Shown here piece after piece: positions 1-59,409 of a stretch of 64,000 bases of DNA. The translations under genes were made by a program, and so were the position numbers. How positions within the stretch are numbered: the first letter of the stretch is position 1; each line of letters opens with the position of its first letter. The stretch comes from Glycera tridactyla. Taxonomy: Eukaryota. A model generated the notes under the pieces. It saw only the letters and a list, made by a program, of their open reading frames with translations, was not told where the DNA came from and did not search any database. The DNA is taken from contig OZ286467.1 in the NCBI GenBank assembly GCA_965644265.1, positions 1,116,001 through 1,180,000 on the forward strand, read 5' to 3'.

Positions 1-776
1 CATGTGGGCGGTCCTTCTCTAATAAGAAAACATTACAGAAGCACGTCCTGCGTCGCCATGGCGGCAACCGTATTTATCAGTGTCCCACGTGCCCCAAGAA
101 GTACGCCTGGCGTGGCGATCTGCTTTACCATTGTAAACGTCTCAAACATCCCATCCCGCACCCGTACGATCTCGGTGTCCGTTATGCGCGAGAGAATGCG
201 GTGAATTATTCGGACCTCGGTGAATGGTCTGATCTTGGCGAACAAGCTTTTCTTCCGCAATCTGGTGACTCTCAGGGGCCGGAGCAACCCATATTTCCCC
301 AAGCCGAGCCACTCTCAAACTATGGTAAAACGGAGGAGGGTCAATCTGCGGCGAGTGAAGGCAGCGTTTCCATGCTATCTCAACAAGCGTCTTTTCCCGA
401 ACTGAAAGCAGCTATCGATCAACCATGTTTTCCTGAAGCAATGCCTGTTGGCAGCAATAGCAATGTTTTCAGCATCCAGCCAATGAAATTACCCGTTAGT
501 GTTCCAGACGAATCCGTTCATGCTGAAAATGATTTGGATGATGATGTCATCAGAGGTGACAGTGCTCCGCCTCAAAACTGTTCAATTGAGATGGGTAACA
601 TGGCGGATCTCACGAAAAACGACATCTCCGACTCTCTTGGAGATTTGATGGATGGAACAAACGAACCAGAAAGTAGTTCCGATGTTGGCTTATTCAGCGA
701 GCTCAACATTAGCAATGTGCGATCAGTCGATCGTCTGTCTGGCGAAGATTCGAAAGAGCCGCCGCTAGTGTCATAA
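1..776 (+). CDS. Variable terminal exon V1 (5'-truncated by window edge): class A C2H2 finger pair plus long acidic/Ser-rich tail
   Basis: Reading from nt 3 gives CGRSFSNKKTLQKHVLRRHGGNRIYQCPTCPKKYAWRGDLLYHCKRLKH, continuing in frame into ORF 201-776; stop TAA 774-776. Acceptor lies upstream of the window. Confidence 0.88.
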   Translation, partial: CGRSFSNKKTLQKHVLRRHGGNRIYQCPTCPKKYAWRGDLLYHCKRLKHPIPHPYDLGVRYARENAVNYSDLGEWSDLGEQAFLPQSGDSQGPEQPIFPQAEPLSNYGKTEEGQSAASEGSVSMLSQQASFPELKAAIDQPCFPEAMPVGSNSNVFSIQPMKLPVSVPDESVHAENDLDDDVIRGDSAPPQNCSIEMGNMADLTKNDISDSLGDLMDGTNEPESSSDVGLFSELNISNVRSVDRLSGEDSKEPPLVS

Positions 777-1664
777 AAAGCATTTTCATGATCTTGGAAG
801 ACTACCGGAACGCTTTTCAGGGCGGATGATGCAGCTGTGAACAATTTTTCTACCGTCCCATTTTAGGGGCAGCAAGTATTAGTTGGTGTTTTTGCATTTT
901 TTGCTGCTTATTCTTCCAGATTTATCAAGCAGTGAGTTATCTTGTTAAATTGTGTGTGTGCGTGGTATATAGTGATTGTGATGGTTGAATCCACATGAAT
1001 TGTGTGGAGAAAATGTATGTATCTATTTATCCAATATTCCCCAAACTGATTGCTTACATGAATTTCAATTCTTCCTGGCTGCGGTTGTTACACAAGTTTA
1101 CTGTCTTCATGTTTCTTGTGATGGGATCTTGATTGGTTGGATTTTGAAGAGCAGGCTATAGACTGTTTATGGACCTCTCTAATTTATTTTTCTTCATTGT
1201 TATATGGTCAATTTCCCGGAAATGACAAAAAGTTTTCATTTCAAAAGTTGCTGTGATCTTGCAGGAAGTTTGAAGTCATATCCCTTTGAGAATATCTCTT
1301 GATTGGAAATTTCATACAGCAGATAATTTTGCTTTCCTTGTTGACATCACTCCTTCATAAAATTACCAAGACAAACTCCGAATACCTTATTTGGGCTGTC
1401 CCACTTGGCAGTAAATAGAGAAATCCCCATTCAAAGCACTTCAATCTCAATGAAACCATGTTTCACAATACACCAGTGAAATGCACAAATTACATTTTTC
1501 AGAAATCATCTGATTTCTCGTGGCTTTGAACCTGGGTTCCCCAGCATGGCACCAACCGCCTAGACTGTGCAGGAGCAAGCTGTCTTGTACGCTGAGCTAT
1601 GTGGACCACTCCAATAAAAGTGGATCTCCTCATACATTTGCTCTTACAGAGGTCCTGTTATGTC

Positions 1665-1886
1665 CAGGGCTCTACGCTAATAGTTGCCCTACTGGCACAG
1701 GCAGGCAGATTTGCTGTTAGGGCAGGTGATTTTATCAATCTGCCTGCCTGATGGGCAGGTACTCAATCATTATTTGGCCTATGATTATAGGCAGGAGGGC
1801 AGGTGAAAATGACTGGGAGGGCAGGTTGAAATTCTACTTCACCTGCCCGAAGGACAGCTGAAGAAAAAAGTTAATGTAGAGCCCTG
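1665..1886. mobile_element. MITE with CAGGGCTCTAC termini
   Basis: cagggctctac ... gtagagccctg; flanks tatgtc/tatgtg. Related internal sequence at ~21620-21720 and ~62075-62200. Confidence 0.65.
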
Positions 1887-3940
1887 TATGTGTGAAGATC
1901 ATTCAATTGTGAAAACTTTCACGGATGATTGGTCATCTAATCGATCTGAATCAATCTTCTCGTAAAATCAATCATCTGCTGATCACTGGTGTTGAGCTCG
2001 TCATTTCTGTCGGACTGTTGGTTGTTTCCTTTGAAATGGCAGTTGAACCTGCTCAAAAGGTCACAAGTGTACAAAAAGGCCACTTCAACAAATGCCTTCA
2101 TTAGCATTTCATACCATCAATGAAGGCTCCACGCAGGCTTGCTTTCTACAAAAACAGCTTTTTCTTATGACTGAAGATTGCTTTTGTAGACAGCTTCAAC
2201 TTTGATTGAACGTTTTTTGTCTCATCCCTCCTTCAAAGCAGGAATATTCAGTGGTGGCAGCTTCATATTCTTTTCTATACGTCTTTGTGAAATTCTTCTT
2301 CGTCTCAGAAGAGGGATTGTGGTCACAGGAGAGAGGGTGGTCAGTTTGGGGTATATTTTATGATGTTCATGTTACTTTTCTGTCTCTCCAGTTTTGTGGA
2401 AAGTTTACAAGAATGCTATTGTGCTTGTCCTGGTTTAGAATTTGATATTCCCAGCCGAAAGACAATCACAATTATTATTTTTTATCTTGTTAGTGCTTTT
2501 TCGATGTAATTGGAAGAATCTCAGAATGTGTGCGCTGCCTATTTGAGTAGTTGTGGGAATTGGTTTTGTTGTTAGGTTATGTTGTTATTGAAGTAGATCA
2601 TATATCTTTAGCAGATGTTTGTTATTGATCAGTGTTGATGGAAAAATTGGACTGCCATTCCCCTTTTGGGATATCAGAATAAATTGAACTTATCACTCTT
2701 CTGGAAGCAATGTCTCTCCTAAATTCGTTATGAAAGGTTCAACTAGTTGAAAAACTTGAGGCTGATATATTTGTGTGAATACATGCCTGATCAAGACTTG
2801 AATTATTTTGAGTCCCGCCAACCCAATTTTTGCCAATATTTTTTCCTCAGAATAATACATATGCGGGCATATATAAAGCCTCGTCGGAAACAGTGTTTAT
2901 TGGTGGTGGAGTCAAAGTTGTGATTTTCTGTCTTGGCAGGTAATGCGCTGCTCTCTCATCTGGGAAAAAAAAACTGTCCTATTGGAATTTTTGAGTTGCC
3001 AAATTAGAAGACTTATCGATGATCAAACAGTTGGTTTATTTTAAGCAGTCATTGACTATATTCAGCAAGAAAAGTCGATCATCATCAGAGATGTAATAGA
3101 GCATTTATACGGTGAAACCTGCATTAAGAGACCACCTCGCAATAAGAGACCACCTCCGAGGATTGTCCCAGTTCCACATGATATCTGGGCTTCCTATAGT
3201 ATCAGGCCTTGATGTTTTGTGTTGCTATATTTCCTAGGGCAATTAACATTTCATTCGGGTAGTCAGTACGACACTGTATGTCTACTTTGTTGTTCACGTG
3301 GAGGTCAGAATATCCACTTAATTTCATCACAATCAAATTGTGTTGTTCCCATAACAAACCCACCTGCCAGTCTGTGCCACATATATCCACCCTTATCTCC
3401 GCTGATTGTACGTTATTTTACCCCTCACTGCCATGATGGAAATGGATCCTGAGTTCAACTATCAGCGATTTCATGCCATTTTCCGGGGTAACCTGACTGT
3501 AAAGCCTTTTTTCTCTCTCGACTATATGGTGAAATATGATGGAATGGTGTAATCATGTCAGGGAACGTTTGTCACATTTTGTGCAAAATCATTCATCTTT
3601 CCCGAAAAGTGTGAACTGAAGAGAAGTCTATGATTTCCGCTACCCATGATCAGAATTAATACTGATATTTGTATGACTTATGAGGAATTCAATCCTCCTT
3701 TTGTGTGTGTGCATGCATGCGCATATGTGCATGCGTGTGTGCGTGCATTCGCTATGGAATGATGCAAGTATGGAAGAACGGAGGTAGGTTATCTCGACCT
3801 CTGTTAATCAGGTGTTTTCACGTCCATACTGGACTTGTAGCCAGGTCAAAGTTCAGGTGTATCAGCTGTGTATTTGATGGGTCGAAAAAGGGTAAATGCT
3901 GCGTGATGGTGACAGCCGATTTTGCTTTTGTGTGTTGCAG

Positions 3941-4243
3941 TCGGTGTGGCCGCCGTCCTCTTGGGTCGATGTCACGCTGTCACCCTCCGCAACATTACCC
4001 GTTTTCACAACAGGTCTTAAATCGCAGCGACTTCCGTGCAAACTTTGTGGTGATACCTTCTCACAGAAACAAGCATTGATGCGTCACCTTCTACGGCGGC
4101 ATGGTGGCAAAAAGGCGTACTGTTGCCCGGTTTGCGGGAAGGGGTATGCGTTGCGTGGCGATCTCCTCTCCCATATGAAGCGTCTGCTCCATTTACCAGA
4201 TGCGGGAGACCCACCGCCTGCGGGCTCGAATCCTGAAGGGTAG
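3941..4243 (+). CDS. Variable terminal exon V2: class A two-finger C2H2
   Basis: Acceptor ttttgtgtgttgcag ends at 3940, phase 0 (SVWPP...). CKLCGDTFSQKQALMRHLLRRHGGKKAYCCPVCGKGYALRGDLLSHMKRLLH; stop at 4243. Confidence 0.88.
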   Translation, partial: SVWPPSSWVDVTLSPSATLPVFTTGLKSQRLPCKLCGDTFSQKQALMRHLLRRHGGKKAYCCPVCGKGYALRGDLLSHMKRLLHLPDAGDPPPAGSNPEG

Positions 4244-9629: not shown

Positions 9630-10046
9630 ATGCTCAATAATGAGGCAGCCATCTTTGCCTTAGACATCAGTCAGTTTCTGCGACCTATGCATCCTAAACC
9701 AGGTCCCGAGCATCGCAAATTCCCATGTTCCGATTGTGGCGATTCCTTTGTACAGCGCCACCATTTGTTGCGTCATAGGCAGAGAAAGCACGGCGGTGTG
9801 CCACGTTTCAAATGTCCCGCGTGCACTAAGGCGTATGCCGTTAAAGACGACCTGATGTTTCACTGTACTCGCACTGGGCATCCTAAACCACAGCACTACG
9901 CGCAAAATCCACCCATATCTCAGAACGAGAGCGAGACATGCCCCGCGAGAGTCTCTCAAGCAGATATCCCACAGAGGACATTTCAAAACCCACCGATTCC
10001 TACTGCCATCATCCATCATTCACAATTTGAAAGCTGGAATATGTGA
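9630..10046 (+). CDS. Variable terminal exon V3: class A two-finger C2H2
   Basis: Acceptor gtttgcgtttctgttgtag ends at 9629, phase 0. CSDCGDSFVQRHHLLRHRQRKHGGVPRFKCPACTKAYAVKDDLMFHCTRTGH. Confidence 0.88.
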   Translation: MLNNEAAIFALDISQFLRPMHPKPGPEHRKFPCSDCGDSFVQRHHLLRHRQRKHGGVPRFKCPACTKAYAVKDDLMFHCTRTGHPKPQHYAQNPPISQNESETCPARVSQADIPQRTFQNPPIPTAIIHHSQFESWNM

Positions 10047-12405: not shown

Positions 12406-12693
12406 ATGCCGTTTGGCAGCATCCACAGAATCGAGCCCCAACTGGATAGTAACTCCGCGGTGCGCTACGTAGCCGTGCCGCTTTCCGACATTCCCGAATT
12501 TCCATGTCCCTCTTGTGGCCAGAAATTCAAGCAGAGTCATCACATGAAGCGACATTGGTTGCGGAAACATGGCGATCGTTCCCGCTACCCGTGCCCCACC
12601 TGTGAAAAGTCGTACGCGGTTGCCGAGGATCTAGTCTCGCACTGTCGCCGTCTCGGTCATTTCGCCATGGACAATGATCCACCAGCCTCCTAG
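12406..12693 (+). CDS. Variable terminal exon V4: class A two-finger C2H2
   Basis: Acceptor ctgtgtgttgcag ends at 12405, phase 0 (MPFGS...). CPSCGQKFKQSHHMKRHWLRKHGDRSRYPCPTCEKSYAVAEDLVSHCRRLGH. Confidence 0.88.
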   Translation: MPFGSIHRIEPQLDSNSAVRYVAVPLSDIPEFPCPSCGQKFKQSHHMKRHWLRKHGDRSRYPCPTCEKSYAVAEDLVSHCRRLGHFAMDNDPPAS

Positions 12694-13150: not shown

Positions 13151-14033
13151 TTCTGAGATTGTGTGATACAACTGGATAAAGTGGCATCTTGTGTTTCTGA
13201 GAATGTGTGATACAACTGGATAAAGTGGCATCTTGTGTTTCTGAGATTGTATGATACAACTGGATAAAGTGGCATCTTGTGTTTCTGAGATTGTATGATA
13301 CAACTGGATAAAGTGGCATCTTGTGTTTCTGAGATTGTGTGATACAACTGGATAAAGTGGCATCTTGTGTTTCTGAGATTGTGTGATACAACTGGATAAA
13401 GTGGCATCTTGTGTTTCTGAGATTGTGTGATACAACTGGATAAAGTGGCATCTTGTGTTTCTGAGATTGTATGATACAACTGGATAAAGTGGCATCTTGT
13501 GTTTCTGAGATTGTGTGATACAACTGGATAAAGTGGCATCTTGTGTTTCTGAGATTGTGTGATACAACTGGATAAAGTGGCATCTTGTGTTTCTGAGATT
13601 GTGTGATACAACTGGATAAAGTGGCATCTTGTGTTTCTGAGATTGTGTGATACAACTGGATAAAGTGGCATCTTGTGTTTCTGAGATTGTGTGATACAAC
13701 TGGATAAAGTGGCATCTTGTGTTTCTGAGATTGTGTGATACAACTGGATAAAGTGGCATCTTGTGTTTCTGAGATTGTGTGATACAACTGGATAAAGTGG
13801 CATCTTGTGTTTCTGAGATTGTGTGATACAACTGGATAAAGTGGCATCTTGTGTTTCTGAGATTGTGTGATACAACTGGATAAAGTGGCATCTTGTCTTT
13901 CTGAGATTGTGTGATACAACTGGATAAAGTGGCATCTTGTCTTTCTGAGATTGTGTGATACAACTGGATAAAGTGGCATCTTATGTTTCTGAGATTGTGT
14001 GATACAACTGGATAAAGTGGCATCTTGTCTTTC
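13151..14033. repeat. 44-bp minisatellite, ~20 copies
   Basis: Unit ttctgagattgtgtgatacaactggataaagtggcatcttgtgt; runs into the V5 acceptor. Confidence 0.95.
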
Positions 14034-14043
14034 TTGCTTGCAG

Positions 14044-14463
14044 AGGGAAGGCTCACTGTATTGTTCACACTGTACAGTCCCACTCACACACCGGGATGAG
14101 TTGGATGCCCATATTATGCAAGCCCATCCCGGTCTCACCATCACAGACAGGAATACGTGCAAGTTCTGCGGTGCTTCATTTGCGTGCCGCCAAAACCTCC
14201 GTCGACATGAAGCACGCAAACATGGTGGCCCAAAAGTGTACAGATGCCCTGAAGCCAAATGCGGCAAAATGTACTCCTTGAAAGAGGACTTACTGTTTCA
14301 TATGCGGCGTTCAGGACATAGTCCACACATGTTGCGACCCCCGGTGGAAGTGAACACTTCACCAAATACTCACGGGTTTGATCAGCATCTTGGGCAAATG
14401 CAAGAGCCAGTGCTACCCAATTTTCAGGGTGACAGGAGCTCAGATTTTTTGTCGCGCAAATAA
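14044..14463 (+). CDS. Variable terminal exon V5: class A three-finger C2H2
   Basis: Acceptor tctttcttgcttgcag ends at 14043, phase 0 (REGSLYC...). Fingers CSHC..HIMQAH, CKFC..HEARKH, CPEAKC..HMRRSGH. AATAAA overlaps the stop (14459-14464). Confidence 0.88.
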   Translation, partial: REGSLYCSHCTVPLTHRDELDAHIMQAHPGLTITDRNTCKFCGASFACRQNLRRHEARKHGGPKVYRCPEAKCGKMYSLKEDLLFHMRRSGHSPHMLRPPVEVNTSPNTHGFDQHLGQMQEPVLPNFQGDRSSDFLSRK

Positions 14464-15001: not shown

Positions 15002-15146
15002 NNNNNNNNNNNNNNNNNNNNNNNNNNNNNNNNNNNNNNNNNNNNNNNNNNNNNNNNNNNNNNNNNNNNNNNNNNNNNNNNNNNNNNNNNNNNNNNNNNN
15101 NNNNNNNNNNNNNNNNNNNNNNNNNNNNNNNNNNNNNNNNNNNNNN
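15002..15146. other. Assembly gap (others: 23922-24190, 30063-30419, 33278-33648)
   Basis: Runs of N. Confidence 1.
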
Positions 15147-16469: not shown

Positions 16470-16745
16470 AGACTATGCGTCAAGTGTGGAACCAGGTTCA
16501 GTTCGTCTTACGCTCTATCAGAACACCTGGCAGCTGTACATGGCAAAAGACATTGCGTCTGTCCAGAATGTGGCGATGCGTTCGCTTGCAAGCAAAACTT
16601 GAGACGTCACCGAATGCGGCGTCACGGCGGTGTCAAGTTGTATCAATGCCCAGAATGCGTTTACAGTTACGCGATCAAGGATGATCTTGTGTTTCACTGC
16701 CGCCGCCTTAGACACCGCTTGCCCGACAACTGGGGCATTGGATAA
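16470..16745 (+). CDS. Variable terminal exon V6: class A three-finger C2H2
   Basis: Acceptor ctgccttcccttgcag ends at 16469, phase 0 (RLCVKC...). Fingers CVKC..HLAAVH, CPEC..HRMRRH, CPEC..YAIKDDLVFHCRRLRH. Confidence 0.88.
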   Translation, partial: RLCVKCGTRFSSSYALSEHLAAVHGKRHCVCPECGDAFACKQNLRRHRMRRHGGVKLYQCPECVYSYAIKDDLVFHCRRLRHRLPDNWGIG

Positions 16746-17366
16746 AATCACCAGGTGGCGGTTCACTACTGCATTTCACCTTCATTTAGGAACCCATGAG
16801 GATGAGACTTGAATGATTCAACCAATGCATATAGCCTAGGTGTCTCAATATAGCCCAGATGGTACTTATAGCACTGCCATGAGATTGAACTTGAATGCAG
16901 TCTGATATGTCTACTTTTTACATTCATGGTCTCCCAGCGGCCTTTCCTGTGCTATTTTCACATTATCATCAATTATTTAGTATGTGTTAGAGGTGTTTAT
17001 GAACTGCCAGATATATCCACTTTACAACCATTCTAGTTCCCCACCTTGTTGCGTTCAGGGGTTGTGTGAGTGATGTCTGCAGAGGGGACAGAATATTCCA
17101 CTGTCATAGATGAGGAACACATGGCATACATAATCCACTGGGCCGACACATGCTGTTAAACTCTAATATATCAATCAATCATTTGGTCGATCACATTAAC
17201 AGTCTTTCCCAACTGAGTCAGGTAGCTCTCAATTCAAATTATGTACAAAATGTCTGATACTGATTGGGACTGAACAGTAATTTAAACATTGATTTATGTG
17301 ATATTTGAATCAGAGAATAATAACTAGTGAATATATTCACTCATAGACTGCTCATTGTGATTGCAG

Positions 17367-17660
17367 AGTTTTGTTACAACCACCTGGGACAGCTGGCTAA
17401 GTCAAGGGTCTCCGTCTGTAGGCCAGAAGCAAATGAGCAAGGTTGATAAACGACGAAAATTCCAGTGTATGATTTGTGGCGACCTGTTTGTGCAGAAAGT
17501 TTGTGTGCAGAAGCACATGTTGCGCAAGCACGGCGGAGAGCGTACCTTCAAGTGTACGCAGTGCGAGAAAACTTATGCTTGGAAATTTGACTTGATGAAC
17601 CATATGAAACGTACGGGACATGTGACTCGGGACGCGTCACTCGGTAATCATCTGGCGTAG
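17367..17660 (+). CDS. Variable terminal exon V7: class A two-finger C2H2
   Basis: Acceptor ctcattgtgattgcag ends at 17366, phase 0. CMICGDLFVQKVCVQKHMLRKHGGERTFKCTQCEKTYAWKFDLMNHMKRTGH. Confidence 0.87.
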   Translation, partial: SFVTTTWDSWLSQGSPSVGQKQMSKVDKRRKFQCMICGDLFVQKVCVQKHMLRKHGGERTFKCTQCEKTYAWKFDLMNHMKRTGHVTRDASLGNHLA

Positions 17661-17675
17661 GATTACACGCTGCAG

Positions 17676-18085
17676 GACCACAGATTTGGACAGAATGATC
17701 ACGAGATTCTGATTTTATAACCCATCTGATAGCTCAGCTGACCACAGATTGAAACTGAATGATCACGAGATCCTGATTTTATAACCTATCTGATAGCTCA
17801 GCTGACCATAGATTTAGACTGAATGATCACGAGATCCTGATTTTATAACCTATCTGATAGCTCAGCTGACCATAGATTTAGACTGAATGATCACGAGATC
17901 CTGATTTTATACCTATCTGATAGCTCAGCTGACCACAGATTTAGACTGAATGATCACGAGATCCTGATTTTATAACCTATCTGATAGCTCAGCTGACCAC
18001 AGATTTAGACAGAATGATCACGAGATTCTGATCTTATAACCTATCTGATAGCTCAGCTGACCACAGATTTAGACAGAATGAGCTA
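17676..18085. repeat. ~64-bp minisatellite, ~6 copies
   Basis: Unit gaccacagatttagactgaatgatcacgagatcctgattttataacctatctgatagctcagct, starting just after the V7 stop. Confidence 0.92.
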
Positions 18086-18410
18086 AACACACTGAGATTC
18101 TCATATTCTGGGAAGTAATGTCTCAGATGGACTGCAGATTTCCATGTTCTTTAGTTACCATCTTTCTCCTAGTGTTGTAAATCTTCTGTGGCGAGGATCA
18201 AATAAACCAAACTATGTAATGAAATGTTCTCGTATGCGAGGAAAGTTGAATCTTGCTCCTCTGTGGGCTTGATGTCATTCGTTTCTGTTCGGTTCTTCGA
18301 CTCTTTACTTAGATTGCTTGGCAACATGTAGTCGGGGAGAATGACTTGGACATAAATATGATCGGAGCTGTATTCTCTGGTTGTTGTAAGCATTCTTCCG
18401 TCCTTTAGAG

Positions 18411-18728
18411 AGAGATCTCATCTCATCACCAGGGGGGAGTTCACATTTTCAAAGAGCTGGTCGGCTTCATGCTGCAAACAGTCGTGAAATGACTCCTATC
18501 AAAAGCACTGGCAGATACCCTTGTTCATTTTGCAATGAAAGCTTCACGCAGGCTAGCAATATGCGACGTCATCAGCAGCGTCGTCATGGCAGCATTAAGA
18601 GGTTTGCTTGTTCCACTTGCCCGTTGGGGTATGCATGGAAGGGCGATCTTGTTGCTCATTGTAAACAGCTGGATCATGTACCACAGATTGCCCAATATCC
18701 CATGAGTCAGTTGCCCAATATCCCATGA
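18411..18728 (+). CDS. Variable terminal exon V8: class A two-finger C2H2; acceptor uncertain, possibly degenerate
   Basis: Open frame 18390-18728 encodes CSFCNESFTQASNMRRHQQRRHGSIKRFACSTCPLGYAWKGDLVAHCKQLDH. The position matching the V9 acceptor reads TGTAA instead of TTTAG. The only phase-0 AG found is tcctttagAG ending at 18410. Confidence 0.7.
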   Translation, partial: RDLISSPGGSSHFQRAGRLHAANSREMTPIKSTGRYPCSFCNESFTQASNMRRHQQRRHGSIKRFACSTCPLGYAWKGDLVAHCKQLDHVPQIAQYPMSQLPNIP

Positions 18729-19035: not shown

Positions 19036-19143
19036 GTATAGATCCAATCTTGGTATCTGTCCAGTGGCATGATGCCTGTCCATTAATTTCACCCAATGAT
19101 ACGCCATATATCTCGGTGCTTTTATTTTTCACCATAAGTATTT

Positions 19144-19538: not shown

Positions 19539-19826
19539 GCATTCATCAGTCCTTTAGAGACACCACCTATGCCACCATCTGGGAGTTCATATTTTCAAAG
19601 AGCTTGGTCTCATCCCGCTCAAAGCACCGGCAGGTACCCATGTATATTTTGCGATAAGAGTTTCACTCGATCGGGGAGCTTGCAGCGCCACCAGCAGCGT
19701 CGACATGGTGGTGTTAAGAGGTTCGCATGTTCCAGTTGCTCCTTGGCGTATGCTTGGAAAAGTGATCTTGTCGCCCATTGTAAACAGCTGGGTCATGTGC
19801 CACAAAGTGATCTCAAAATTCCATGA
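19539..19826 (+). CDS. Variable terminal exon V9: class A two-finger C2H2, close paralogue of V8
   Basis: Acceptor ttttctggttgttttag ends at 19538, phase 0 (AFISPLETPPMPP...). CIFCDKSFTRSGSLQRHQQRRHGGVKRFACSSCSLAYAWKSDLVAHCKQLGH. Confidence 0.87.
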   Translation, partial: AFISPLETPPMPPSGSSYFQRAWSHPAQSTGRYPCIFCDKSFTRSGSLQRHQQRRHGGVKRFACSSCSLAYAWKSDLVAHCKQLGHVPQSDLKIP

Positions 19827-20997: not shown

Positions 20998-21273
20998 GCT
21001 GTGTGCCCTGTGTGTAAGAAAGCTTTTGGTCGGCCAGACGCTCTCCGGAAGCATTATCGCGAGGTGCACCTCCGCATGAGGAAATTCTTCTGCCAGCAAT
21101 GTCAGATTAGTTTCGGGCAGAGCATAAATTTGAAACGACACATGATGCGTCGTCATGGTGGACAACGCATTCATGCATGCACACAATGCGAGTTCTCGTA
21201 TGCACTCAAAGAAGATCTCTTGGCACATCTGAAACGAACCGGACATGTTCTCCAGCCTAATCAGGAGTCATGA
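20998..21273 (+). CDS. Variable terminal exon V10: class A three-finger C2H2
   Basis: Acceptor ctttattgtctttgcag ends at 20997, phase 0 (AVCPVC...). Last finger CTQCEFSYALKEDLLAHLKRTGH. Confidence 0.88.
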   Translation, partial: AVCPVCKKAFGRPDALRKHYREVHLRMRKFFCQQCQISFGQSINLKRHMMRRHGGQRIHACTQCEFSYALKEDLLAHLKRTGHVLQPNQES

Positions 21274-22459
21274 ACCGTTTACTCACTGGTGAATGAAATA
21301 CATCTCCGTTTATTCTGATTTCAAATATCCTTGCTGGCACCTTTGGTCCAATGGACAGTTCTGCGGATGGCTCGCATTGGTAGCACAGACCTCACATTAG
21401 TATATCGAAATTCTTATGTAATGGAAAGATCCACGGTACTCACAGTGGTTTAGGGAAAGTCGGAACTTCCAGAGCCCATCCAGACTCTCCTCAGTGAGTT
21501 GGTACTGTCATGTGACCTCCGGATCTTGTTGGGATCACGTGATTGAGACCAAACTTGAGAGGATGAGTGCTTCATGTATACCCTAAAACCTGCCTTGTTG
21601 GCCTAACAGGCAAATTTATTGTTAGGGCAGGTAGATTTGTCAGTCTGCCTGCCTGATGGGCAGGTATATCTTTGGTTAAATGCAAACAGACAGTTGAAAA
21701 CGTTTTGAAGGGCTGGTGAGAATTTGACCTTGCCCACTTGAAGGTCAATGTAGAGAATGAAGATGATGCTGTGTACTGTAGAGAAGATTCTCGGTACTAA
21801 TGGAAGGCAAGTTGTTGAGTAGCTGTTGAGGTAAAGTGTCCTCACCCCTTCGGTGGCAAAAGCGATGATTGGATCCCTACCACGTGACAAGTTGTGAAGC
21901 TCCCGGTTAATGGCCGGGAGGGTGTGTCGGCCCATGTCCCTATTCAGTGATGGGTGCTCCTGGTTGATTCGACTGCTTATTGAGAAACTTTCATGGTTCC
22001 AATGTAATCATAATTTGGCCAGTCATAAGAGTAGTGTGCAGATAGGAGCGTGGCCTGTATTGGGGACATTTTAACTGCAACAAGAAGCAGCCCAGCATCT
22101 GAGGATTGAGATTTCATTTCGACATGCACCTATGTGTGGTCATGATCACCCACAATGCTTCACCGATAATTCTCTTCAATAAATGATGTCAAATTCTGAT
22201 GTTACTTGACACTTGTCTTTTGATCTGATATTTGTGGTAAGTAATTGGTTTCAAAACAAGCCATATCTGCAATTTGTACTTGGGCTTTTTATCATCATGC
22301 CTCCACCCGGTAAATTCCCTGCATGTTAGGAGAACACACTTGGTGCTTGGGTGCAACTAACGTGGCTTTTTGCTCGCCTGATTTGAGGGGACCCACTACT
22401 CCCCCGCACACTTGATGATTCTGGATGACTGATGCGTGGTTTCATCTTCTGTATTGCAG

Positions 22460-23173
22460 TTTATACTACAACAGCTGGATCTGTTGTCGCAGTCCTCGCC
22501 CGTTGGAACGGGCAGTCACCAGTGTCCCGAATGTGGGAAGCGCTATAGCTTCCAGCATGCCATGAAGCGCCACATGGATATCAAACATGGCAGCCGGCGT
22601 CGGCTCTGGTCTTGCATTCATTGCGGCCGTTCGTTCACGCGCCAGGACAGCCTGCTTCGGCACAAGCTCCTTGTGCACAAAGTCGAGAATGAATTTCGGT
22701 GTCCCCACAATTGTGGATTCAGCACCCATCAGGCTCGGGCACTCAATTTGCATCTGATGGCCAAATGCACAAACTCGCCTCTCTTCGATGTGGCGCACAT
22801 ACTTTCTGATCAGGCGTCCGGCAGTCTCAATTTAATGCATGCTTTAGTTCCGGTTGCTGAACCCAACACTGTTCCCTCATCTCAGACAGTGTCGTTTGTT
22901 CCCCATTTGTCAGAACTGACATATACGATGAAGACTTCTCCCGATGCAAAACCAGTTGCCGCCCCAGTTGCCGGGGTGGCGTCTCAGCTTCATATGCAGC
23001 CTACACCCACCCCAAAACATGTGTCAGTCTCTCAGGCAGATTTACCAGATGGTACACCAGTTGCCAGGGTGGGATCTCAGCTTCATGTCCAGCCATCACC
23101 TACACCAGACCATGTGTCAGTCTCTCAGCCAGATTTATCTGGTGAAGAACATCCACCACATGCTGCGAATTAG
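22460..23173 (+). CDS. Variable terminal exon V11: class B (two C2H2 plus one C2HC finger) with Pro/Ser-rich tail
   Basis: Acceptor tcttctgtattgcag ends at 22459, phase 0. CPEC..HMDIKH, CIHC..HKLLVH, CPHNCGFSTHQARALNLHLMAKC. Tail has two copies of a ~30-aa repeat (PVA.V.SQLH.QP.PTP.HVSVSQ.DL). Confidence 0.87.
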   Translation, partial: FILQQLDLLSQSSPVGTGSHQCPECGKRYSFQHAMKRHMDIKHGSRRRLWSCIHCGRSFTRQDSLLRHKLLVHKVENEFRCPHNCGFSTHQARALNLHLMAKCTNSPLFDVAHILSDQASGSLNLMHALVPVAEPNTVPSSQTVSFVPHLSELTYTMKTSPDAKPVAAPVAGVASQLHMQPTPTPKHVSVSQADLPDGTPVARVGSQLHVQPSPTPDHVSVSQPDLSGEEHPPHAAN

Positions 23174-34151: not shown

Positions 34152-35138
34152 TTACCAGGCGCGTCGTCGGCGTATAAACGCGGGTACCTGATGGCACTAG
34201 CAGTGCTTGGACTCAATCCAAATGCGGCCGGACTCGGTAGCCCAGCTTCGCCTTTAGACGCGGCAAATATTTCGACCGCAGTCAGCGGTCAGTCATCGCC
34301 AGTTGACCCGGAACAAGTTAGAAGCATCAGCCCGACCATTCTAAAGCTGCGCGAGCAACTGCAGAGTAGGTTAGGAATGGCGAGACCTGGCGGTGGCAAC
34401 TTGAGTGTCATCAGAGAAACACCTAAATTCACGAAGGAATTAAGTTCCTCAAAGGTATTGGGGACGGTACACAATGTTACTGAGGGGAGCTCGAAAGGTA
34501 AAGAAGATGAAGCAGAGGTTGCAGGTATATATTCTGATTCAAGGGTAGGGAAACCTGAAGCGCAGAAGGTGCGTAAGCCGGAGGAGAGCAAAGATAAGGC
34601 ATCGAGTTCGCTTACTCCTCATAAACCACCAGAGTTGGTCACCAAGGAAGGTGCTGTTGAGTCGGATGATGGGCAGAGTACAGTGGAATCGCTATCTACC
34701 CGAGCGGGATTCAACACCCGCAAGACGGCATTCACTAGGCCTGCAACACTCAATATCTCCCCGCGTACATCTGCTCCGAGATTGCCATTGAAAGCACGCA
34801 AAATTCTTGCTGGACATCCAGAATCAGGAGCTATAGTTGATTCAGAAGGTGCATTAAATCTTGTTATGAAATCTCCAGGAGGTAAGGAAATGGTTGCTGC
34901 AAAAGCTGGGCCTGCCCAATCATCGCGGGCGAAGGCGACTGAATCTGGAATAGATGATGCTGCGGCTGGCGGTTCAGATGCCGCAGTCAAGTCGGAAAAC
35001 ATTGCAGCGAGTCCAGTTGTTGAAAACCCTGTACCGGAAATGTCACCTGTATATTGCTATCGATGTCACTATTGTAATCTCGGGTTTCTGAATGACGTCT
35101 TGCTGAAGGAGCATCAGAAGGAGTCTCATGATGCGTAA
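34152..35138 (+). CDS. Variable terminal exon V12: long low-complexity region with a single C-terminal C2H2 finger
   Basis: Acceptor gtgtctgttttcag ends at 34151, phase 0 (LPGASSAYKRGYLM...). Ends YRCHYCNLGFLNDVLLKEHQKESHDA; open frame of 328 codons before the stop. Confidence 0.82.
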   Translation, partial: LPGASSAYKRGYLMALAVLGLNPNAAGLGSPASPLDAANISTAVSGQSSPVDPEQVRSISPTILKLREQLQSRLGMARPGGGNLSVIRETPKFTKELSSSKVLGTVHNVTEGSSKGKEDEAEVAGIYSDSRVGKPEAQKVRKPEESKDKASSSLTPHKPPELVTKEGAVESDDGQSTVESLSTRAGFNTRKTAFTRPATLNISPRTSAPRLPLKARKILAGHPESGAIVDSEGALNLVMKSPGGKEMVAAKAGPAQSSRAKATESGIDDAAAGGSDAAVKSENIAASPVVENPVPEMSPVYCYRCHYCNLGFLNDVLLKEHQKESHDA

Positions 35139-37470: not shown

Positions 37471-38112
37471 ACTTCGTCACTGGCAAAGAAATCTACATTC
37501 AGCATTGAATCCGACCGTTCTTCAGCAGACCCATCAGCGATGCAGACAGACCCTTTACCCGTCAAATTGTTTGTACGCAATAGGTTGAGGAGTTCATCTG
37601 CTGTGGACGTCAAGTTCTACAGCCCAGATGGCGTTGACAGTGATGAGAAACTGCCCAGGAGGTCGACTCCTTCCGGAAGATATTATCAACGAAAGTTGAA
37701 GAAAATGACACCTCTACAGATCCAGCAATTCCGTGAAACTGAAAGAGAGCGAACGAGAGCAATTTATCACAAACAGAAAGATGAAATGACTGACGAGCAA
37801 ATAGAGCGCCGCAGAGCTGCAGGAAGACTGAGAGCTCAGCATTTTCGTGACCGGAAAAGAGAAAAGGCTGCTCAGCAACCGAAATGTCCCATTAATAAGG
37901 CACAGAAAGAGAGAGAAGCTAGGCAAAAACGGCAGCATGAGTCAAAAATTAGAAAGGGAATGACACAAGCCGAGAGAGAAGAGAAAGAAGCCAGGCAAAA
38001 TCAGCAGCGTGAGTATTGGAGAATTAAAAAGCAGGAGTCAAGAAATAAAAAGCGAATGAAAAAGCAATTGAAAATCAAGATTGAACCGGAAACTGACCAT
38101 GGTGGCCACTAA
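37471..38112 (+). CDS. Variable terminal exon V13: non-zinc-finger, basic helical/coiled-coil repeat domain
   Basis: Acceptor tttttccattattgcag ends at 37470, phase 0. Has ~27-aa R/K/E-rich repeats starting MTPLQIQQFRE..., MTDEQIERRR..., MTQAEREEKE...; conserved with V14. Confidence 0.75.
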   Translation, partial: TSSLAKKSTFSIESDRSSADPSAMQTDPLPVKLFVRNRLRSSSAVDVKFYSPDGVDSDEKLPRRSTPSGRYYQRKLKKMTPLQIQQFRETERERTRAIYHKQKDEMTDEQIERRRAAGRLRAQHFRDRKREKAAQQPKCPINKAQKEREARQKRQHESKIRKGMTQAEREEKEARQNQQREYWRIKKQESRNKKRMKKQLKIKIEPETDHGGH

Positions 38113-40330: not shown

Positions 40331-40786
40331 ACTGCGTTCAGCAATATATTCGATGGTTCGTCAGCGGACCCAAAGGTGATTCAGACAGATGCTTTACCGG
40401 TCAAACTGTATGTACACAGGAGGTTGAGGAGTTCATCTGCTGTGGACGTCAAGTTCTTCAGCCCAGATGGCGATGACAGTGATGAGAAACCGCCTAGGAG
40501 GTTGAGTCCTTCCGGAAGTTATTACCAACGAAAGTTGAAGAAAATGACACCTCTACAGATCCAGCAGTTCCGCGAAGCTGAGACTAAGCGAGTGAAAGCA
40601 TGTCGTGAAAAACAGAAAGACACATTGACCGAGGCGCAAATAGAGCGCCGCAGAGCTGCGGCAAGACTGCGTAGTAGGCTTTATAATAAGCGGAAAAAGG
40701 AAAAAGCTGCTCAGCAACCAAATTGTCTCACTAATGAGACACAGGAAGAGAGAGAAGCCAGGCAAAACCGGCAGCGTGAGTATTGA
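40331..40786 (+). CDS. Variable terminal exon V14: paralogue of V13 with a premature stop
   Basis: Acceptor tttttccgttattgcag ends at 40330, phase 0. Aligns to V13; V13 TGG (EYWRIKK) is TGA here (40784-40786), and the downstream sequence still reads RIKKQESRKKKQMKKQLKIKIEPETDHGGH. Confidence 0.7.
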   Translation, partial: TAFSNIFDGSSADPKVIQTDALPVKLYVHRRLRSSSAVDVKFFSPDGDDSDEKPPRRLSPSGSYYQRKLKKMTPLQIQQFREAETKRVKACREKQKDTLTEAQIERRRAAARLRSRLYNKRKKEKAAQQPNCLTNETQEEREARQNRQREY

Positions 40787-41114: not shown

Positions 41115-41295
41115 TACAGTCGAACCTGCTCTAAAGACCACCTCTCTATAAAGACCACCTCTCTATAAAGACCACCTGAGCTGTGACCGTGGTAGTATTT
41201 TCAACAGTAAATGACCTCTCTATAAAGACCACCTGCCCATAAAGACCGCTTTTTGACGCGACCGAAGGCGGTCTTTATAGACAGGTTCCACTGTA
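41115..41295. mobile_element. MITE family 1 copy
   Basis: TIRs present; the paralogous site after V13 (~38350) lacks it. Confidence 0.78.
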
Positions 41296-41518: not shown

Positions 41519-41700
41519 TACAGTCGAACCTGTCTATAAAGACCGCCTTCGGTCGCATCAAAGAGTGGTCTTTATAGGCAGGTGGTCTTTATAGAGAGGT
41601 CATTTACTGTAGAAAATACTACCACGATCGCAGCTCAGGGTGATCTTTATAGAGAGGTGGTCTCTATAGAGAGGTGGTCTTTAGAGCAGGTTCGACTGTA
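41519..41700. mobile_element. MITE family 1 copy
   Basis: tacagtcgaacc ... ggttcgactgta. Confidence 0.8.
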
Positions 41701-45108: not shown

Positions 45109-45585
45109 TTTAGTTCAGCATGCCATCAATATGATTAGTTCAGCATGCCATCAATATGATTAGTTCAGCATGCCATCAATATGATTAGTTCAGCATGCCA
45201 TCAATATGATTAGTTCAGCATGCTATCAATATGATGAGTTCAGCGTGCCATCAATATGATGAGTTCAGCATGTCATCAATATGATTAGTTCAACATGTCA
45301 TCAATATGATTAGTTCAGCATGTCATCAATATGATCAGTTCACCATGCCATCAATATGATTAGTTCAGCGTGTCATCAATATGATTAGTTCAGCATGCCA
45401 TCAATATGATTAGTTCAGCATGTCATCTATATGATTAGTTCAGCATGCCATCAATATGATTAGTTCAGCATGTCATCAATATGATTAGTTCAGCATGTCA
45501 TCAATATGATTAGTTCAGCATGTCATCAATATGATTAGTTCAGCATGCCATCAATATGATTAGTTCAGCATGCCATCAATATGAT
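45109..45585. repeat. 25-bp minisatellite, ~19 copies, followed by a degenerate T-rich derivative to ~45735
   Basis: Unit ttagttcagcatgccatcaatatga. Confidence 0.93.
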
Positions 45586-48165: not shown

Positions 48166-48347
48166 TACAGTCGAACCTGCTTTAAAGACCACCTCTCTGT
48201 AGAGACCACCTCTCTATAAAGACCGCCCTGAGCTGCGACCGTGGTAGTATTTGCAACAGTAAATGACCTCTCTATAAGGACCACCTGCCTATAAAGACCA
48301 CTTTTTGATGCGACCGAAGGCGGTCTTTATAGACAGGTTCGATTGTA
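48166..48347. mobile_element. MITE family 1 copy, 130 bp upstream of the V15 acceptor
   Basis: tacagtcgaacc ... ggttcgattgta. Confidence 0.78.
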
Positions 48348-48477: not shown

Positions 48478-49785
48478 TCATCTCGCCAAACTTCTCTCCA
48501 CGAAGCTAGTGTATGTGGTCCCATTGGCAAAGAATGCAACTTTCCCGTTACTAAGCCCATGACCTCCATGACCCGCCAAGATGTGACCTTTGACCTTCAG
48601 CCAGGGAAATGCAGTAGAAAGTCGGTTGATTATCTTAGTAGTTCCTTGACCCCCACAGAAAGGGATCAGCCATTGATCAGGCAGAATACTGGTTTATCCG
48701 CAGTAAGATACGAGTCACGAGACAAGCTCCCTCCTCTTCTACAGATTGAGCAAACTAGACCCGTATGTAGTTCCTTTCTTGATGAAATGTTGAGGGTTTG
48801 CAAGTTTTCAGTTGACTCATCACCAGAGGAGTCTGTTACTCTACCCACACAGTCAGAAGTTATCCAGGTTTCTGACAACAAAACATCATCCAACATCACG
48901 AACAGCAGTCGGGCAATCCGCAAATCCGAACGCATCCAAAGGAAGCGAAGCAAAGCTCAATCCAAAATTCACCTAACACCAGTGAATAAAGCAGATATGG
49001 ATACAAGTGGTGTAGTGGATACTAGGGAAAAACTTGGAGAGAAAGGTCATGGCCCAATTCAAAAGGTGAAACATGGCCCAGTGAGAATTCCCAGCAACCT
49101 AGATAACGTCTCTCTCAGAACTCATGGCATTTACACTGACTGTAAAGTTTCATCAAGTAAAAAAACGAAAGAAATGGATTTCTTGCCAATCATGTGCAGA
49201 CATGTGCCTGTTATTATCAGATGTGTGCACAAAAAGTCCAAGAGCTCACGTGTCAAGTGGTTTCCTTGCGATAAATGTGGGGCGGCATTCAGGTCACGCG
49301 CTTCCTTGAAGCATCACAGGGGAGGTCATGAAGAGAAAGGTCATCACCCCATTCAAAAGGTGAAACATGGCCCAGTGAGAATTCCCAGCAACCTAGATAA
49401 AGTCTCTCTCAGTGCTCATGGCATTTACACTGACTGTAAAGTTAATCTTACCAGGATTCCTGAAAAGTACCTGAAAACACTTGCATCCAGTAAAAAACCA
49501 AAGAAAGTGGATTTCTTGCCTATCATGTGCAGACATGTGCCTCTTATGATCAGGTGTATACACAAAAAGTCCAAGATCTCACGTGTTAAGTGGTTTCGCT
49601 GCGATAAATGTGGGGCGGCATTCAAGTCACGCGTTTTCTTGAAGCATCACAGGGGAGGTCATGAAGAGGAGATTCGGGAGAAGTGTGTCTTCTGTTTGAA
49701 AACATTTTCTGGTCCCGCTGCTCTGCGTTCCCATCTCACAGCCGTGCACAAGACGAGAATGTCATTGAGGCCGCGAAAACCATGA
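48478..49785 (+). CDS. Variable terminal exon V15: long exon with an internally duplicated finger module and a third C2H2 finger
   Basis: Acceptor ttgcttttatttttcag ends at 48477, phase 0 (SSRQTS...). Two copies of HGPVRIPSNLD...CDKCGAAF.SR..LKHHRGGH, then CVFCLKTFSGPAALRSHLTAVH. Confidence 0.83.
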   Translation, partial: SSRQTSLHEASVCGPIGKECNFPVTKPMTSMTRQDVTFDLQPGKCSRKSVDYLSSSLTPTERDQPLIRQNTGLSAVRYESRDKLPPLLQIEQTRPVCSSFLDEMLRVCKFSVDSSPEESVTLPTQSEVIQVSDNKTSSNITNSSRAIRKSERIQRKRSKAQSKIHLTPVNKADMDTSGVVDTREKLGEKGHGPIQKVKHGPVRIPSNLDNVSLRTHGIYTDCKVSSSKKTKEMDFLPIMCRHVPVIIRCVHKKSKSSRVKWFPCDKCGAAFRSRASLKHHRGGHEEKGHHPIQKVKHGPVRIPSNLDKVSLSAHGIYTDCKVNLTRIPEKYLKTLASSKKPKKVDFLPIMCRHVPLMIRCIHKKSKISRVKWFRCDKCGAAFKSRVFLKHHRGGHEEEIREKCVFCLKTFSGPAALRSHLTAVHKTRMSLRPRKP

Positions 49786-52513: not shown

Positions 52514-53362
52514 TCTGCTAGGCTGTCAATGGCTGCTGGGTGTGGAATGTTTGGATACATCAGTGTGAAGCCTGAAAACAGCAGGCATGAGCAAAGTACC
52601 AGTCACATCAATGAAGATCGTCATCCTCATCATCATCAGTCTTTCTCGAAGAACTCACGACAATCAGTATCGCAGAGACGTGAGAATCACGCTAAAAAGA
52701 ATCAGAGAACAAGAATCAGTGCCCAAGCAGCTGACTTGACCCCTGACGCTACTCCACGCCACAGTCAGGGCTATGATTTATCACGTGGTGATTCTAGTCA
52801 ACTTCTGTCTGTTGTGGATGCAACATCAGGGATTGATTATCAGGGTAATCAGGAAGGCAAGCAGGAGCCAGCAGATGATGAAATGAAACCCTTTTCAAGT
52901 GGTGTTTCTTATGACCAATCTGGAATGTATTTCGACGCTTATAACCAGTCCAGTCATTACGCCAATTCCATGAACCAACCGGGTGTTAGCGGTATACAAT
53001 CCGTAGGAAATATGTCGTTTGGAAACTTGATGGGTCATCAGGGAGCTTTCGGTTTTGGTGTTGCAAATTCTGCAAGTAAATACGTGTCAACAGATAGGCG
53101 GAGAGGAACCTACTCTTGCCACATCTGTAAAAAGGCGTTCACATTCAAGAACGTCTTGGTTCGGCATTTGAAAACGCACGCGGCACAAGACCTCTCATGC
53201 ACTCACTGCAAAAAGTCTTTCAATCGCAATGATGTCCTACAGCGCCATCTGTTAACAGTACATAAAGTCACCAAGTTGCTTGTCTGCCCACTGGATTGTG
53301 GGTTTAGTACGACCAAACAGCAAGGCCTCACTCTACATCAGTGTAACTCAAAAAATCGTTAA
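52514..53362 (+). CDS. Variable terminal exon V16: class B (two C2H2 plus C2HC)
   Basis: Acceptor ttttttattttggttccag ends at 52513, phase 0 (SARLSM...). CHICKKAFTFKNVLVRHLKTH, CTHCKKSFNRNDVLQRHLLTVH, CPLDCGFSTTKQQGLTLHQC. Confidence 0.87.
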   Translation, partial: SARLSMAAGCGMFGYISVKPENSRHEQSTSHINEDRHPHHHQSFSKNSRQSVSQRRENHAKKNQRTRISAQAADLTPDATPRHSQGYDLSRGDSSQLLSVVDATSGIDYQGNQEGKQEPADDEMKPFSSGVSYDQSGMYFDAYNQSSHYANSMNQPGVSGIQSVGNMSFGNLMGHQGAFGFGVANSASKYVSTDRRRGTYSCHICKKAFTFKNVLVRHLKTHAAQDLSCTHCKKSFNRNDVLQRHLLTVHKVTKLLVCPLDCGFSTTKQQGLTLHQCNSKNR

Positions 53363-55890: not shown

Positions 55891-57221
55891 GCCTTTTGAA
55901 CTACAGGTGTTCCAATAAAGAAACACTAGACAGATAAGTCAGTTCTCAGCTTAGGATGACCAGTCATTGCCACTGATTGCAATCAATCTTTGTTAGTCAC
56001 CCACGAGGAAGTCTGGAAGAACTAGAATCTTGGCCTGGAAAATGTATGGAAAAAGTATGGAATTTGATTTACAAATCTGGCTATGAAACCTGTATGATGT
56101 TGAACAGGTGATGCAAAATGACCTTGTTGAGGTTAGCTGCTTGCTAAAAGGAAACCAACTAACCTTGAATTTAAAAAAAAAAAATTATGGTTTTCCCTTA
56201 TCCACAGTATGGAAATTAAACAAAATTACAGCTGAACATTGATATAGCACTCCCAAATAATCAGTTACTGGATCAATTATTGGTGTATTGTTGATATTAC
56301 ACTACCCAATGGTAATGAAATTATAGTGAAACCTACGACAAGAGACCGCCCTAAATGTCACCAAAAAGTGGTCTCTCAAAAGAGATGGTTTCTCGTCGGA
56401 GGTATATTTGATTAAGTCAATTAGAAAAGCTGCCCGGGAAAAGCGGTCTCCCATCGGAGGTGGTCTCTCGTCGCAGGTTCCACTGTGCATGTATTAGAAT
56501 ATGCTTGGTACATGTCTACCACTCCATCCATAAGATACATATAAGACAATATATCTTTTCATTTATAATTTTATCTAATAGGTCACAGTTGAATGAACAG
56601 ATCTAATGAGTGTAATCACATGTAATAGATTGTGGATGTTATAATTGTACAAATGTTGTTTTCACCTAATAAAGTATAAGTTATTGTCATTCTCATTGTC
56701 CATCTTTTTTGCATTGTAATGTTCTGTTACCCACAGATACGGGTATACAGCATACGATAACAGGGTGTCATTCAGATGAAGCTCAATCAAACCAAGCCAA
56801 ACTTTCTCCATCCCAAGATGAGATCAGCAAGTGGAGGCCATGTGACTTTATTGGGTGTCCCTTGGGAAATGGTGTAACGCTGGGCTTCCTCTAGGATGGA
56901 AAGACTTTTAGTGAATGATTTTAGCAAAATCGAAATAATTTTAGCAATTCAGAATGCCAAATCGATTCAATTGCATTTTCTCACCAAAACAAATTAAATT
57001 AATAAATTTACATCTACTATGAAGCACCACTACCACTTTTGTGCTATCAGAAATGAAAATCACTTTAGCAAATCATTTTAGCGAATGAGGTTTTCCTCAG
57101 CATTTCACTGATTAGCTATAGCTAAAACACTAATCTATAGAGGGAGACCTGAAACGTGGTGGACACGTCACTCGGATATGGCCCATATGTTAATGGTAGG
57201 GATAATGTACTAGAAACCATA

Positions 57222-57389
57222 TACAGTCGAACCTGGCTATAAAGACCGCCTTCGGTCACACCAAAAAGCGGTCTTTATGGGCAGGTGGTCTTTTACTGTT
57301 GAAAATACTATCACGGTCGCACCTCAGGGCATTCTTTATAGGCAGGTGGTCTTTATAGAGAGGTGGTCTTTAGAGCAGGTTTGACTGTA
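57222..57389. mobile_element. MITE family 1 copy
   Basis: tacagtcgaacc ... ggtttgactgta. Confidence 0.78.
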
Positions 57390-58289: not shown

Positions 58290-58920
58290 TTCCAGTATAT
58301 AATTTGTGTCCCCCCAAAGGTCAATCGTCAACGTCACAGGAGCTATTTAAAGATTTTCTTATTTCACACTCTAACTCAAGCTAGCACTGATGGACATTGA
58401 TCAACCTCATACAAAGTGTTGACCTGATGATGGGACATCTCCCTTTTGATGCATGTGACCCTAGGTCAAAGGTCAAGGTCACAGGAGCTATTTATAGATT
58501 TTCTTATTTTACCCTGATCCAATCTATCATCGATGGATGTGAACCGTATTTATAAAGAGTAATGACCAGATGATGGGACATCTCCCTTTAGATGCATGTG
58601 ACCTGAGATCAAAGGTCAAGGTCACAATAGGTATTCATAGATTGTCACATTTTACACGATTACTCCAGCTACTTGATATTTTGGTGGTCCATTAGATGTG
58701 AATATGCTAGGGATGTGATTGTCCCTCGCCATAAAGCGGGGGGCTATTAAAATGATGGGCGTCCATCTGTCAATGCATCTGTGCATCCATCGACCTTTGG
58801 TTTCTGCTCATTATCTCAGGTATTGCTGTCAGAACTGACTCCTTGAGTGTCTGTTAATTTCATAAAATGTTTGACTTCCATTGAGGACCCAGAAGGAGGA
58901 GTGTTGAAAGGTCCCGTCAG
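58290..58920. mobile_element. HINE-like fragments
   Basis: Repeated ggtcaaaggtcaaggtcac modules (58450-58630), and ttgtccctcgcc...gggggctattaaaatgatgggcgtccatctgtc at ~58720 resembling the 25386 head. Confidence 0.45.
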
Positions 58921-59031
58921 TCCCCATTGCATTGGCTTCTCAATATAGCACAGGTGGTGTTCATGGGAAAACCTACCGACCAATCAAGATGCAAGTCAGA
59001 TACTGATGCTAGATTGTCTGTCTCTTTGCAG

Positions 59032-59409
59032 CAGTATCCTATGCTACCACCACCGCCACCCTATGAAATGTGCCTGATGGGCCAGATCGGCAGTAAACCT
59101 CGTTCAGCAAAGTCGCCAATACCTTGCACAGTCTGCGGCCGAGTGTTCAGTCATACATACACACTGAGGCGCCATCTAGAGCAACATACAAACAACCAGC
59201 ATCCTTGCGAGCTGTGCGGAAAATCATATGTTCGTCTCGATGTTTTGCATCGTCATAGACTGGAAGTTCACAAAGTTCGGAAATTACATGTTTGTCCGAA
59301 CCAATGTGGTTTCAGCACTGACCACCAGACGGCCTTGAGGTTGCATGTGCAAAAATGTGACGGGAAGCTCAGGGCATTTGTTAATAAACCTGAGATTGTT
59401 TATGAATAG
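59032..59409 (+). CDS. Variable terminal exon V17: class B (two C2H2 plus C2HC)
   Basis: Acceptor gtctgtctctttgcag ends at 59031 (tandem CAG alternative, also phase 0). CTVC..HLEQH, CELC..HRLEVH, CPNQCGFSTDHQTALRLHVQKC. Confidence 0.87.
   Translation, partial: QYPMLPPPPPYEMCLMGQIGSKPRSAKSPIPCTVCGRVFSHTYTLRRHLEQHTNNQHPCELCGKSYVRLDVLHRHRLEVHKVRKLHVCPNQCGFSTDHQTALRLHVQKCDGKLRAFVNKPEIVYE

Follow-up and report, generated by a model that had tools for sequence, protein, structure and literature searches.

A tandem array of putative alternative last exons encoding zinc-finger and basic-helix modules on contig OZ286467.1

We have analysed a 64,000-nucleotide (nt) stretch of contig OZ286467.1 (assembly GCA_965644265.1, forward-strand positions 1,116,001 to 1,180,000; hereafter the window, numbered from its first letter), which carries 17 coding segments over ~59 kb, all on the plus strand and each closed by its own stop codon. 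These segments probably belong to one gene with interchangeable C-termini, that is, to a locus organized like Drosophila longitudinals lacking (lola). We also lean towards their being alternative last exons of one transcription-factor gene that are joined in cis. The window would then represent the 3′ part of this gene, with the constant 5′ coding exons lying upstream of nt 1. The one-gene interpretation had been put forward in an earlier note on this DNA. Splice-phase statistics, exons devoid of a start codon, the exon spacing, one spliced RNA contig and a conserved 3′ splice site spoke for it, and the part that did not emerge from the data is the shared donor.

The array was delimited by a six-frame scan of the window. 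Fifteen plus-strand open frames displayed the C2H2 spacing, and two further frames, paralogous to each other, had no fingers (coordinates in Table 1; exons are named here by their first nt). Pfam recognized C2H2 fingers in 14 segments; exon 34152 has a single canonical C-x2-C-x12-H-x4-H finger that falls under the Pfam reporting level and was called by spacing. Thus, 15 exons could be assigned a DNA-binding module, 14 of them through Pfam and one through spacing, and such a module is presumed for the two basic-helix exons. The earlier inventory of 17 plus-strand segments with their own stops, 15 with fingers and two basic helical, agreed with both the scan and Pfam. The same scan revealed no genuine fingers on the minus strand, where six regular-expression matches corresponded to microsatellite or chance, and no further convincing exon was found behind the other strong acceptors of the window. 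Scans with Rfam and for tRNAs gave no matches. The first segment opens in the middle of a finger at the window edge, which indicates that the array extends upstream of the window.

The 15 splice acceptors listed in the earlier note were all real AG dinucleotides, and a crude 3′ splice-site score placed each of them among the best 10% of such sites on the plus strand. All are in phase 0 and ten read TTGCAG, a hexamer with 24 plus-strand sites in the window, ten of which coincide with exon acceptors. In a phase test independent of that list, where every AG from the frame opening to the first finger was scored in 16 exons, the top-scoring AG was in phase 0 in 13 exons (binomial P about 1e-4), or in 14 with a corrected landmark for exon 14044. 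The exceptions were 3940, a near tie, and the exon opening at 18390, in which the AG homologous to the 19538 acceptor of its paralog has been lost (TAAG in place of TAGG). A uniform phase could also have been inherited by duplication in a tandem cluster of separate small zinc-finger (ZNF) genes, or in two or three genes with sub-arrays, having their own promoters and 5′ exons, an alternative that we consider unlikely. The class A exons described below are paralogous (35-60% identity), so their phase could be shared by descent. However, phase 0 is common to the non-homologous class A, class B, basic-helix, 34152 and 48478 exons, and shared descent alone is therefore an insufficient explanation.

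Exons 14044, 16470 and 22460 have no in-frame ATG anywhere ahead of their first finger, a feature that also argues against separate genes, and the first finger of exons 16470 and 20998 begins as early as codon 3 of the exon. The claim that most segments open after an acceptor rather than at an ATG was thus supported with respect to the acceptors, which are strong and in phase 0, and proved too broad with respect to the start codons, as only three exons lack a usable ATG. In the dense part of the array, the stop-to-next-acceptor distance is 625-1354 nt, and spacings of 625-814 nt would leave separate genes little room for a 3′ untranslated region (UTR), a promoter, a 5′ exon and an intron. The inter-exon open reading frames (ORFs) contained no repeated 5′-exon-like coding piece, only minisatellites and an interspersed repeat resembling a short interspersed nuclear element (SINE), in line with the earlier claim of no shared coding exon between the segments. 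Likewise, none of the 5′ or effector exons that each segment would need as an independent ZNF gene was found to recur. A shared docking or selector motif was not detected upstream of the 16 acceptors either, where only the interspersed repeat was present, in both orientations.

The RNA evidence came from four small runs of one study, labelled “RNA?”, as assembled contigs with a depth of 2-5x that were placed on positions 17000-22999. Coverage was exon-biased, with 1-kb stretches at zero depth; 18200-18599 and 19400-20399 were at zero in all four runs, providing a silent control. Exons 17367, 20998 and 22460 were covered by RNA, so that at least three exons of the array are transcribed, and exon 37471 gave a weak transcription signal (17% of its words in one run). 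Four RNA variants in coding sequence were translated and all four were synonymous. Runs X3 (21219-21240) and X4 (22867-22882) each showed a cluster of six differences within ~20 nt, five of the six in X3 at third codon positions, which suggests that these contigs derive from a divergent allele or from a close paralog located elsewhere in the genome.

One contig of run X2, 1,235 nt long, ends with 88 nt that match positions 20994-21081, and its other 1,147 nt are joined to the exon exactly at acceptor 20997. The match runs four letters (GCAG) past the exon edge, which suggests a donor exon ending in GCAG. Since no joint for this contig lies inside 17000-20993, the donor would be at least 4 kb upstream, past three other finger exons. 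Such a long-range splice is what the alternative-last-exon model predicts, and it fits poorly with a nearby private promoter of the kind that separate genes would have. The predicted joining of one donor to many acceptors was thus observed at 20997, and the shared donor was not seen for a second acceptor. The chaining of segments into one mRNA, which the earlier note had named as grounds for abandoning the one-gene interpretation, was looked for, and no contig joining two variable exons was seen in the four runs over 17000-22999.

The same junction bears on a spliced-leader operon, in which close same-strand genes would receive a short leader at each acceptor. A strong acceptor ahead of every ORF and an ATG directly after the AG in two exons would suit such an arrangement. 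However, a leader would measure a few tens of nt, and the sequence joined at 20997 measures 1,147 nt. In most exons, moreover, no ATG intervenes between acceptor and first finger, and two exons open inside a finger. The operon is contradicted by these data and we give it a negligible probability.

The only close relative found was represented by 1,240 nt of genomic sequence in an ENA metagenome (P0002/L001). Compared with it, the finger module of exon 22460 gave a ratio of nonsynonymous to synonymous substitution rates (dN/dS) of 0.04, with dS about 1.6 and thus saturated synonymous sites, and the tail of the exon gave a dN/dS of 0.27. The 32 nt ahead of acceptor 22459 are identical in the relative at 31 positions, including a CTGAT branch-point-like motif and the pyrimidine tract, and the first ~40 nt of the exon are far less conserved. 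This degree of identity despite saturated synonymous sites supported that acceptor 22459 is under purifying selection. A second conserved block, of ~55 nt and containing ACTAAC, lies at 22330-22390, that is, 70-130 nt upstream of the acceptor, and is a candidate distal branch point, splicing enhancer or promoter. No counterpart of this block was found upstream of the other exons.

This block, and the RNA profile next to it, raise the alternative that the gene follows the same logic and its variable exons have promoters of their own and reach the constant exons through trans-splicing, as in Drosophila mod(mdg4). The block before 22459 could be a promoter or a trans-splicing element, comparable to the intron motifs of mod(mdg4) described in PMC13490949. 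RNA coverage extends ~1 kb beyond the stop of exon 20998, ends at about 22314 and starts again only at 22456, where a second X2 contig starts 4 nt ahead of exon 22460. The coverage up to about 22314 likely reflects a 3′ UTR belonging to exon 20998, and the empty gap that follows, like the unspliced contigs that start 85-125 nt ahead of acceptor 20997, would be compatible with local promoters. However, these contig starts (near 20872-20912) adjoin the repeat where assemblies break, the 16 upstream regions share no motif save the interspersed repeat, and trans-splicing is unnecessary, given that all exons are on one strand. Altogether, we judge trans-splicing improbable.

Selection differed between the two paralog pairs examined within the array, with a dN/dS of 0.2 for 18411/19539 and of 0.72 for 37471/40331. 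The mutated ancestral AG and the lack of RNA suggest that exon 18411 is possibly decaying. A 23-nt minisatellite with 15 copies (18688-19035) begins in the last codons of this exon, whose C-terminus therefore runs into the repeat.

In the mechanism that we propose for a single gene with cis-joined last exons, a phase-0 upstream donor, on an exon probably ending in GCAG, would be spliced to one terminal exon out of at least 16-17, all of which would have individual stops and 3′ ends. Transcription would proceed through the array, and one isoform would result when a 3′ splice site is selected and the RNA is cleaved and polyadenylated behind the corresponding exon. The isoforms would share a common N-terminal part and differ in their DNA-binding module, which could be a class A pair or triple, a class B three-finger set, a single or odd finger set, or basic helices. 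We infer from the array that the same donor would serve all exons, that joining would occur in cis and that the modules would bind different DNA sites.

Several observations weigh against this interpretation, three of which favour separate ZNF genes. The same upstream exon was found on two variable exons in no read or contig, so a common donor was never seen; 13 exons have some in-frame ATG and are in principle translatable alone; and two contigs cross acceptor 20997 unspliced, as pre-mRNA or through an internal start. In addition, the RNA depth is low, the content of the 1,147 nt joined at 20997 was not read, exons 18411 and 19539 had no RNA in the four runs, and canonical poly(A) hexamers are irregular and not near every stop. 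A full-length isoform was not found using the 435-amino acid (aa) exon, the 237-aa exon or a profile of ten class A exons as queries. An exhaustive representative search did not recover one either; multi-finger proteins crowded its output, and this negative result means little. Apart from generic poly-finger proteins and the genomic scrap of a relative, the protein searches had no yield; due to length limits and swamping by poly-finger proteins, blank isoform searches carry little weight. The exact look-up of seven guessed products of the RNA contigs retrieved none in the protein collection. Of two metagenome scans for related loci, one was blank and the other retrieved only unrelated finger genes through a single short pattern, and crude literature searching found no such array described outside arthropods.

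An all-against-all comparison of the exons defined a class A with ten members, three of which carry an additional N-terminal finger, and a class B with three (22460, 52514 and 59032), whose three-finger module ends C-P-x2-C-G-F-S-T. The remaining exons are the basic pair 37471/40331 and the singletons 34152 and 48478. The class A consensus is C-x2-C-G-x-S-F-x-Q-x3-L-x-R-H-x2-R-R/K-H-G-G for finger 1 and C-P-x-C-x-K-x-Y-A-x-K-x-D-L-x2-H-x-K/R-R-x-G-H for finger 2. Zinc ligands and hydrophobic core are invariant, and helix positions 2 and 3 of finger 1 differ between exons. Judged from the sequences, this is the pattern expected if the modules contact DNA differently. Two finger exons contain internal repeats: a 93-nt tandem repeat is found in the coding sequence of the 22460 tail (22964-23137), and a ~190-nt duplication in exon 48478 (49148-49335 and 49481-49668) gives two near-identical finger units.

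Structure prediction for exon 37471 gave ~65 disordered residues followed by four to five long helices (predicted local distance difference test, pLDDT, of 86-96; predicted template modelling score, pTM, of 0.27), which are built of ~27-residue basic units opening M-T-x-x-Q. The basic helical nature of the non-finger exons was confirmed, and DNA binding is presumed for both. Pfam and PDB sequence searches gave no match for them, and no fold match was meaningful. An Atlas lead (0.74) to the STPR domain (FMBP-1/ZNF821, PF21107) was unconfirmed, as Pfam did not report this domain even when the threshold was relaxed to E 10.

Table 1. Features of the exon array. Spans include the stop codon, open frames exclude it; all positions are those of the window.
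Span	Strand	Open frame	Feature	Remarks
1..776	+	3-773	Terminal exon truncated by the window start; class A pair (mid-finger start) and acidic tail	Stop 774-776
3941..4243	+	3941-4240	Variable exon, class A C2H2 pair	Acceptor AG ends at 3940
9630..10046	+	9630-10043	Variable exon, class A pair	Acceptor 9629
12406..12693	+	12406-12690	Variable exon, class A pair	Acceptor 12405
14044..14463	+	14044-14460	Variable exon, 3 fingers (class A pair and one)	Acceptor 14043; no in-frame ATG ahead of finger 1
16470..16745	+	16470-16742	Variable exon, 3 fingers, finger 1 from exon codon 3	No upstream in-frame ATG
17367..17660	+	17367-17657	Variable exon, class A pair	RNA contigs in 2 runs
18411..18728	+	18390/18411-18725	Paralog of 19539 exon, ancestral acceptor mutated	Weak in-phase AG at 18410; no RNA seen
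19539..19826	+	19539-19823	Variable exon, class A pair	Acceptor 19538; no RNA in four runs
20998..21273	+	20998-21270	Variable exon, 3 fingers	RNA contig spliced exactly at acceptor 20997
22330..22390	+		Conserved intronic block with ACTAAC, 70-130 nt ahead of acceptor 22459	Related-species comparison
22428..22459	+		3′ splice-site region: CTGAT branch-point-like motif, pyrimidine tract, CAG	31/32 nt identical in relative
22460..23173	+	22460-23170	Variable exon, class B three-finger module and repetitive tail	RNA in 4/4 runs; no ATG before fingers
34152..35138	+	34152-35135	Variable exon, long disordered region, then one C-terminal C2H2 finger	
37471..38112	+	37471-38109	Variable exon without fingers: ~65 disordered residues, then 4 or 5 long basic helices (predicted)	
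40331..40786	+	40331-40783	Shortened paralog of 37471 exon	68% aa identity; dN/dS 0.72
48478..49785	+	48478-49782	Variable exon, 435 codons, internal duplication, 3 fingers	
52514..53362	+	52514-53359	Variable exon, ~195 residues without domain, then class B three-finger module	
59032..59409	+	59032-59406	Variable exon, class B three-finger module	Last one in the window

The window contains four runs of N. All of them fall outside the coding segments, and the closest comes to within ~500 nt of an exon edge. One gap (15002-15146) lies between stop 14463 and acceptor 16469, and the other three between stop 23173 and acceptor 34151. In this latter interval, the same block occurs twice, at 24191-30062 and 30421-33273. 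The copies, which share 96-99% identity and whose limits coincide exactly with the gaps, look like two haplotypes or a collapsed repeat set in tandem by the scaffolder. Hence, the order and spacing over 23.9-33.6 kb and the 11-kb distance from stop to acceptor are unreliable, and exons could hide in the gaps. Only the first copy harbours a 170-nt tandem repeat (25549-26344) and a retroelement insertion, the latter with a 406-codon plus-strand ORF at 27773-28993 (Pfam RVT_1, E 4e-31).

Other repeats are spread over the introns. A 44-nt minisatellite with 20 copies and 98% matches (13151-14034) ends 9 nt before acceptor 14043; its 132-nt periodicity renders the long minus-strand ORFs over the same positions artefactual. 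The SINE-like repeat, ~170 nt long and present in both orientations, was located at 19144-19312, 20553-20729, 25018-25188, 31248-31418, 41115-41295, 41519-41700, 48166-48347, 57219-57389 and 61734-61905. In the RNA runs its contig depth is in the thousands, and contigs break there. A 25-nt tandem repeat with 19 copies (45110-45585) lies in a 7.7-kb exon-free interval.

Arrays of last exons through which a single transcription factor exchanges its DNA-binding domain are textbook insect oddities, as in lola and mod(mdg4). If our interpretation is true, the locus described here would be a second, non-orthologous case, suggestive of a recurrent design and not of a one-off, the more so in another phylum. 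With at least 15 finger modules on a single scaffold, the array would also provide natural material for work on the diversification of binding specificity, and would warn annotators, since such loci get split into many small “ZNF genes”. PMC11426971 reports TTK-type BTB domains, those of lola and mod(mdg4), from arthropods only. If the host belongs to another phylum, the constant domain should be something other than a TTK-type BTB. An independently evolved lola-like hub in a non-arthropod host, with an N-terminal effector or oligomerisation domain other than a TTK-type BTB and dozens of swappable DNA-binding exons, is a tentative extension of the one-gene interpretation that we find rather doubtful; it would point to transcription-factor specificities being multiplied, lineage-wide, by alternative last exons in place of gene duplication.

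The closest likeness is to lola, in which tandem alternative 3′ exons with their own stops also lie on the same strand, mostly encode a pair of C2H2 fingers and in a few cases have none. Fingers are present in 15 of the 17 exons here, and 17 of 20 lola isoforms carry different C-terminal C2H2 fingers according to PMC11426971. In contrast to lola, the constant region lies outside the window and the array is known from its variable exons alone, exon orthology is not detectable, and no longitudinals lacking protein was among the profile matches, a weak test. Moreover, both fingers of the class A pair fit the C2H2 spacing here and each module is a single exon. The locus would be a new member of the lola-like kind of locus, which is distinct from membership in the lola family. 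PMC13490949 describes mod(mdg4) as having common 5′ exons joined to one of more than 30 alternative 3′ exons. The window resembles it in the conserved intron elements upstream of variable exons, whereas the mod(mdg4) modules are mostly FLYWCH, some are on the opposite strand and all are trans-spliced; here, one strand carries C2H2 or basic-helix modules. Tandem C2H2 ZNF clusters, such as those of KRAB-ZNF genes, are also made of many same-strand finger exons that arose by duplication. However, the genes of such clusters encode many fingers in one exon and come with effector-domain exons and promoters of their own, whereas the array has one to three fingers per exon, no interspersed effector exons and three exons without a start codon. 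Finally, in the clustered protocadherin and UGT1A loci, variable first exons with their own promoters are joined to constant 3′ exons. One constant part would likewise be combined with one exon of a tandem array in the locus studied here, in a mirror-image arrangement.

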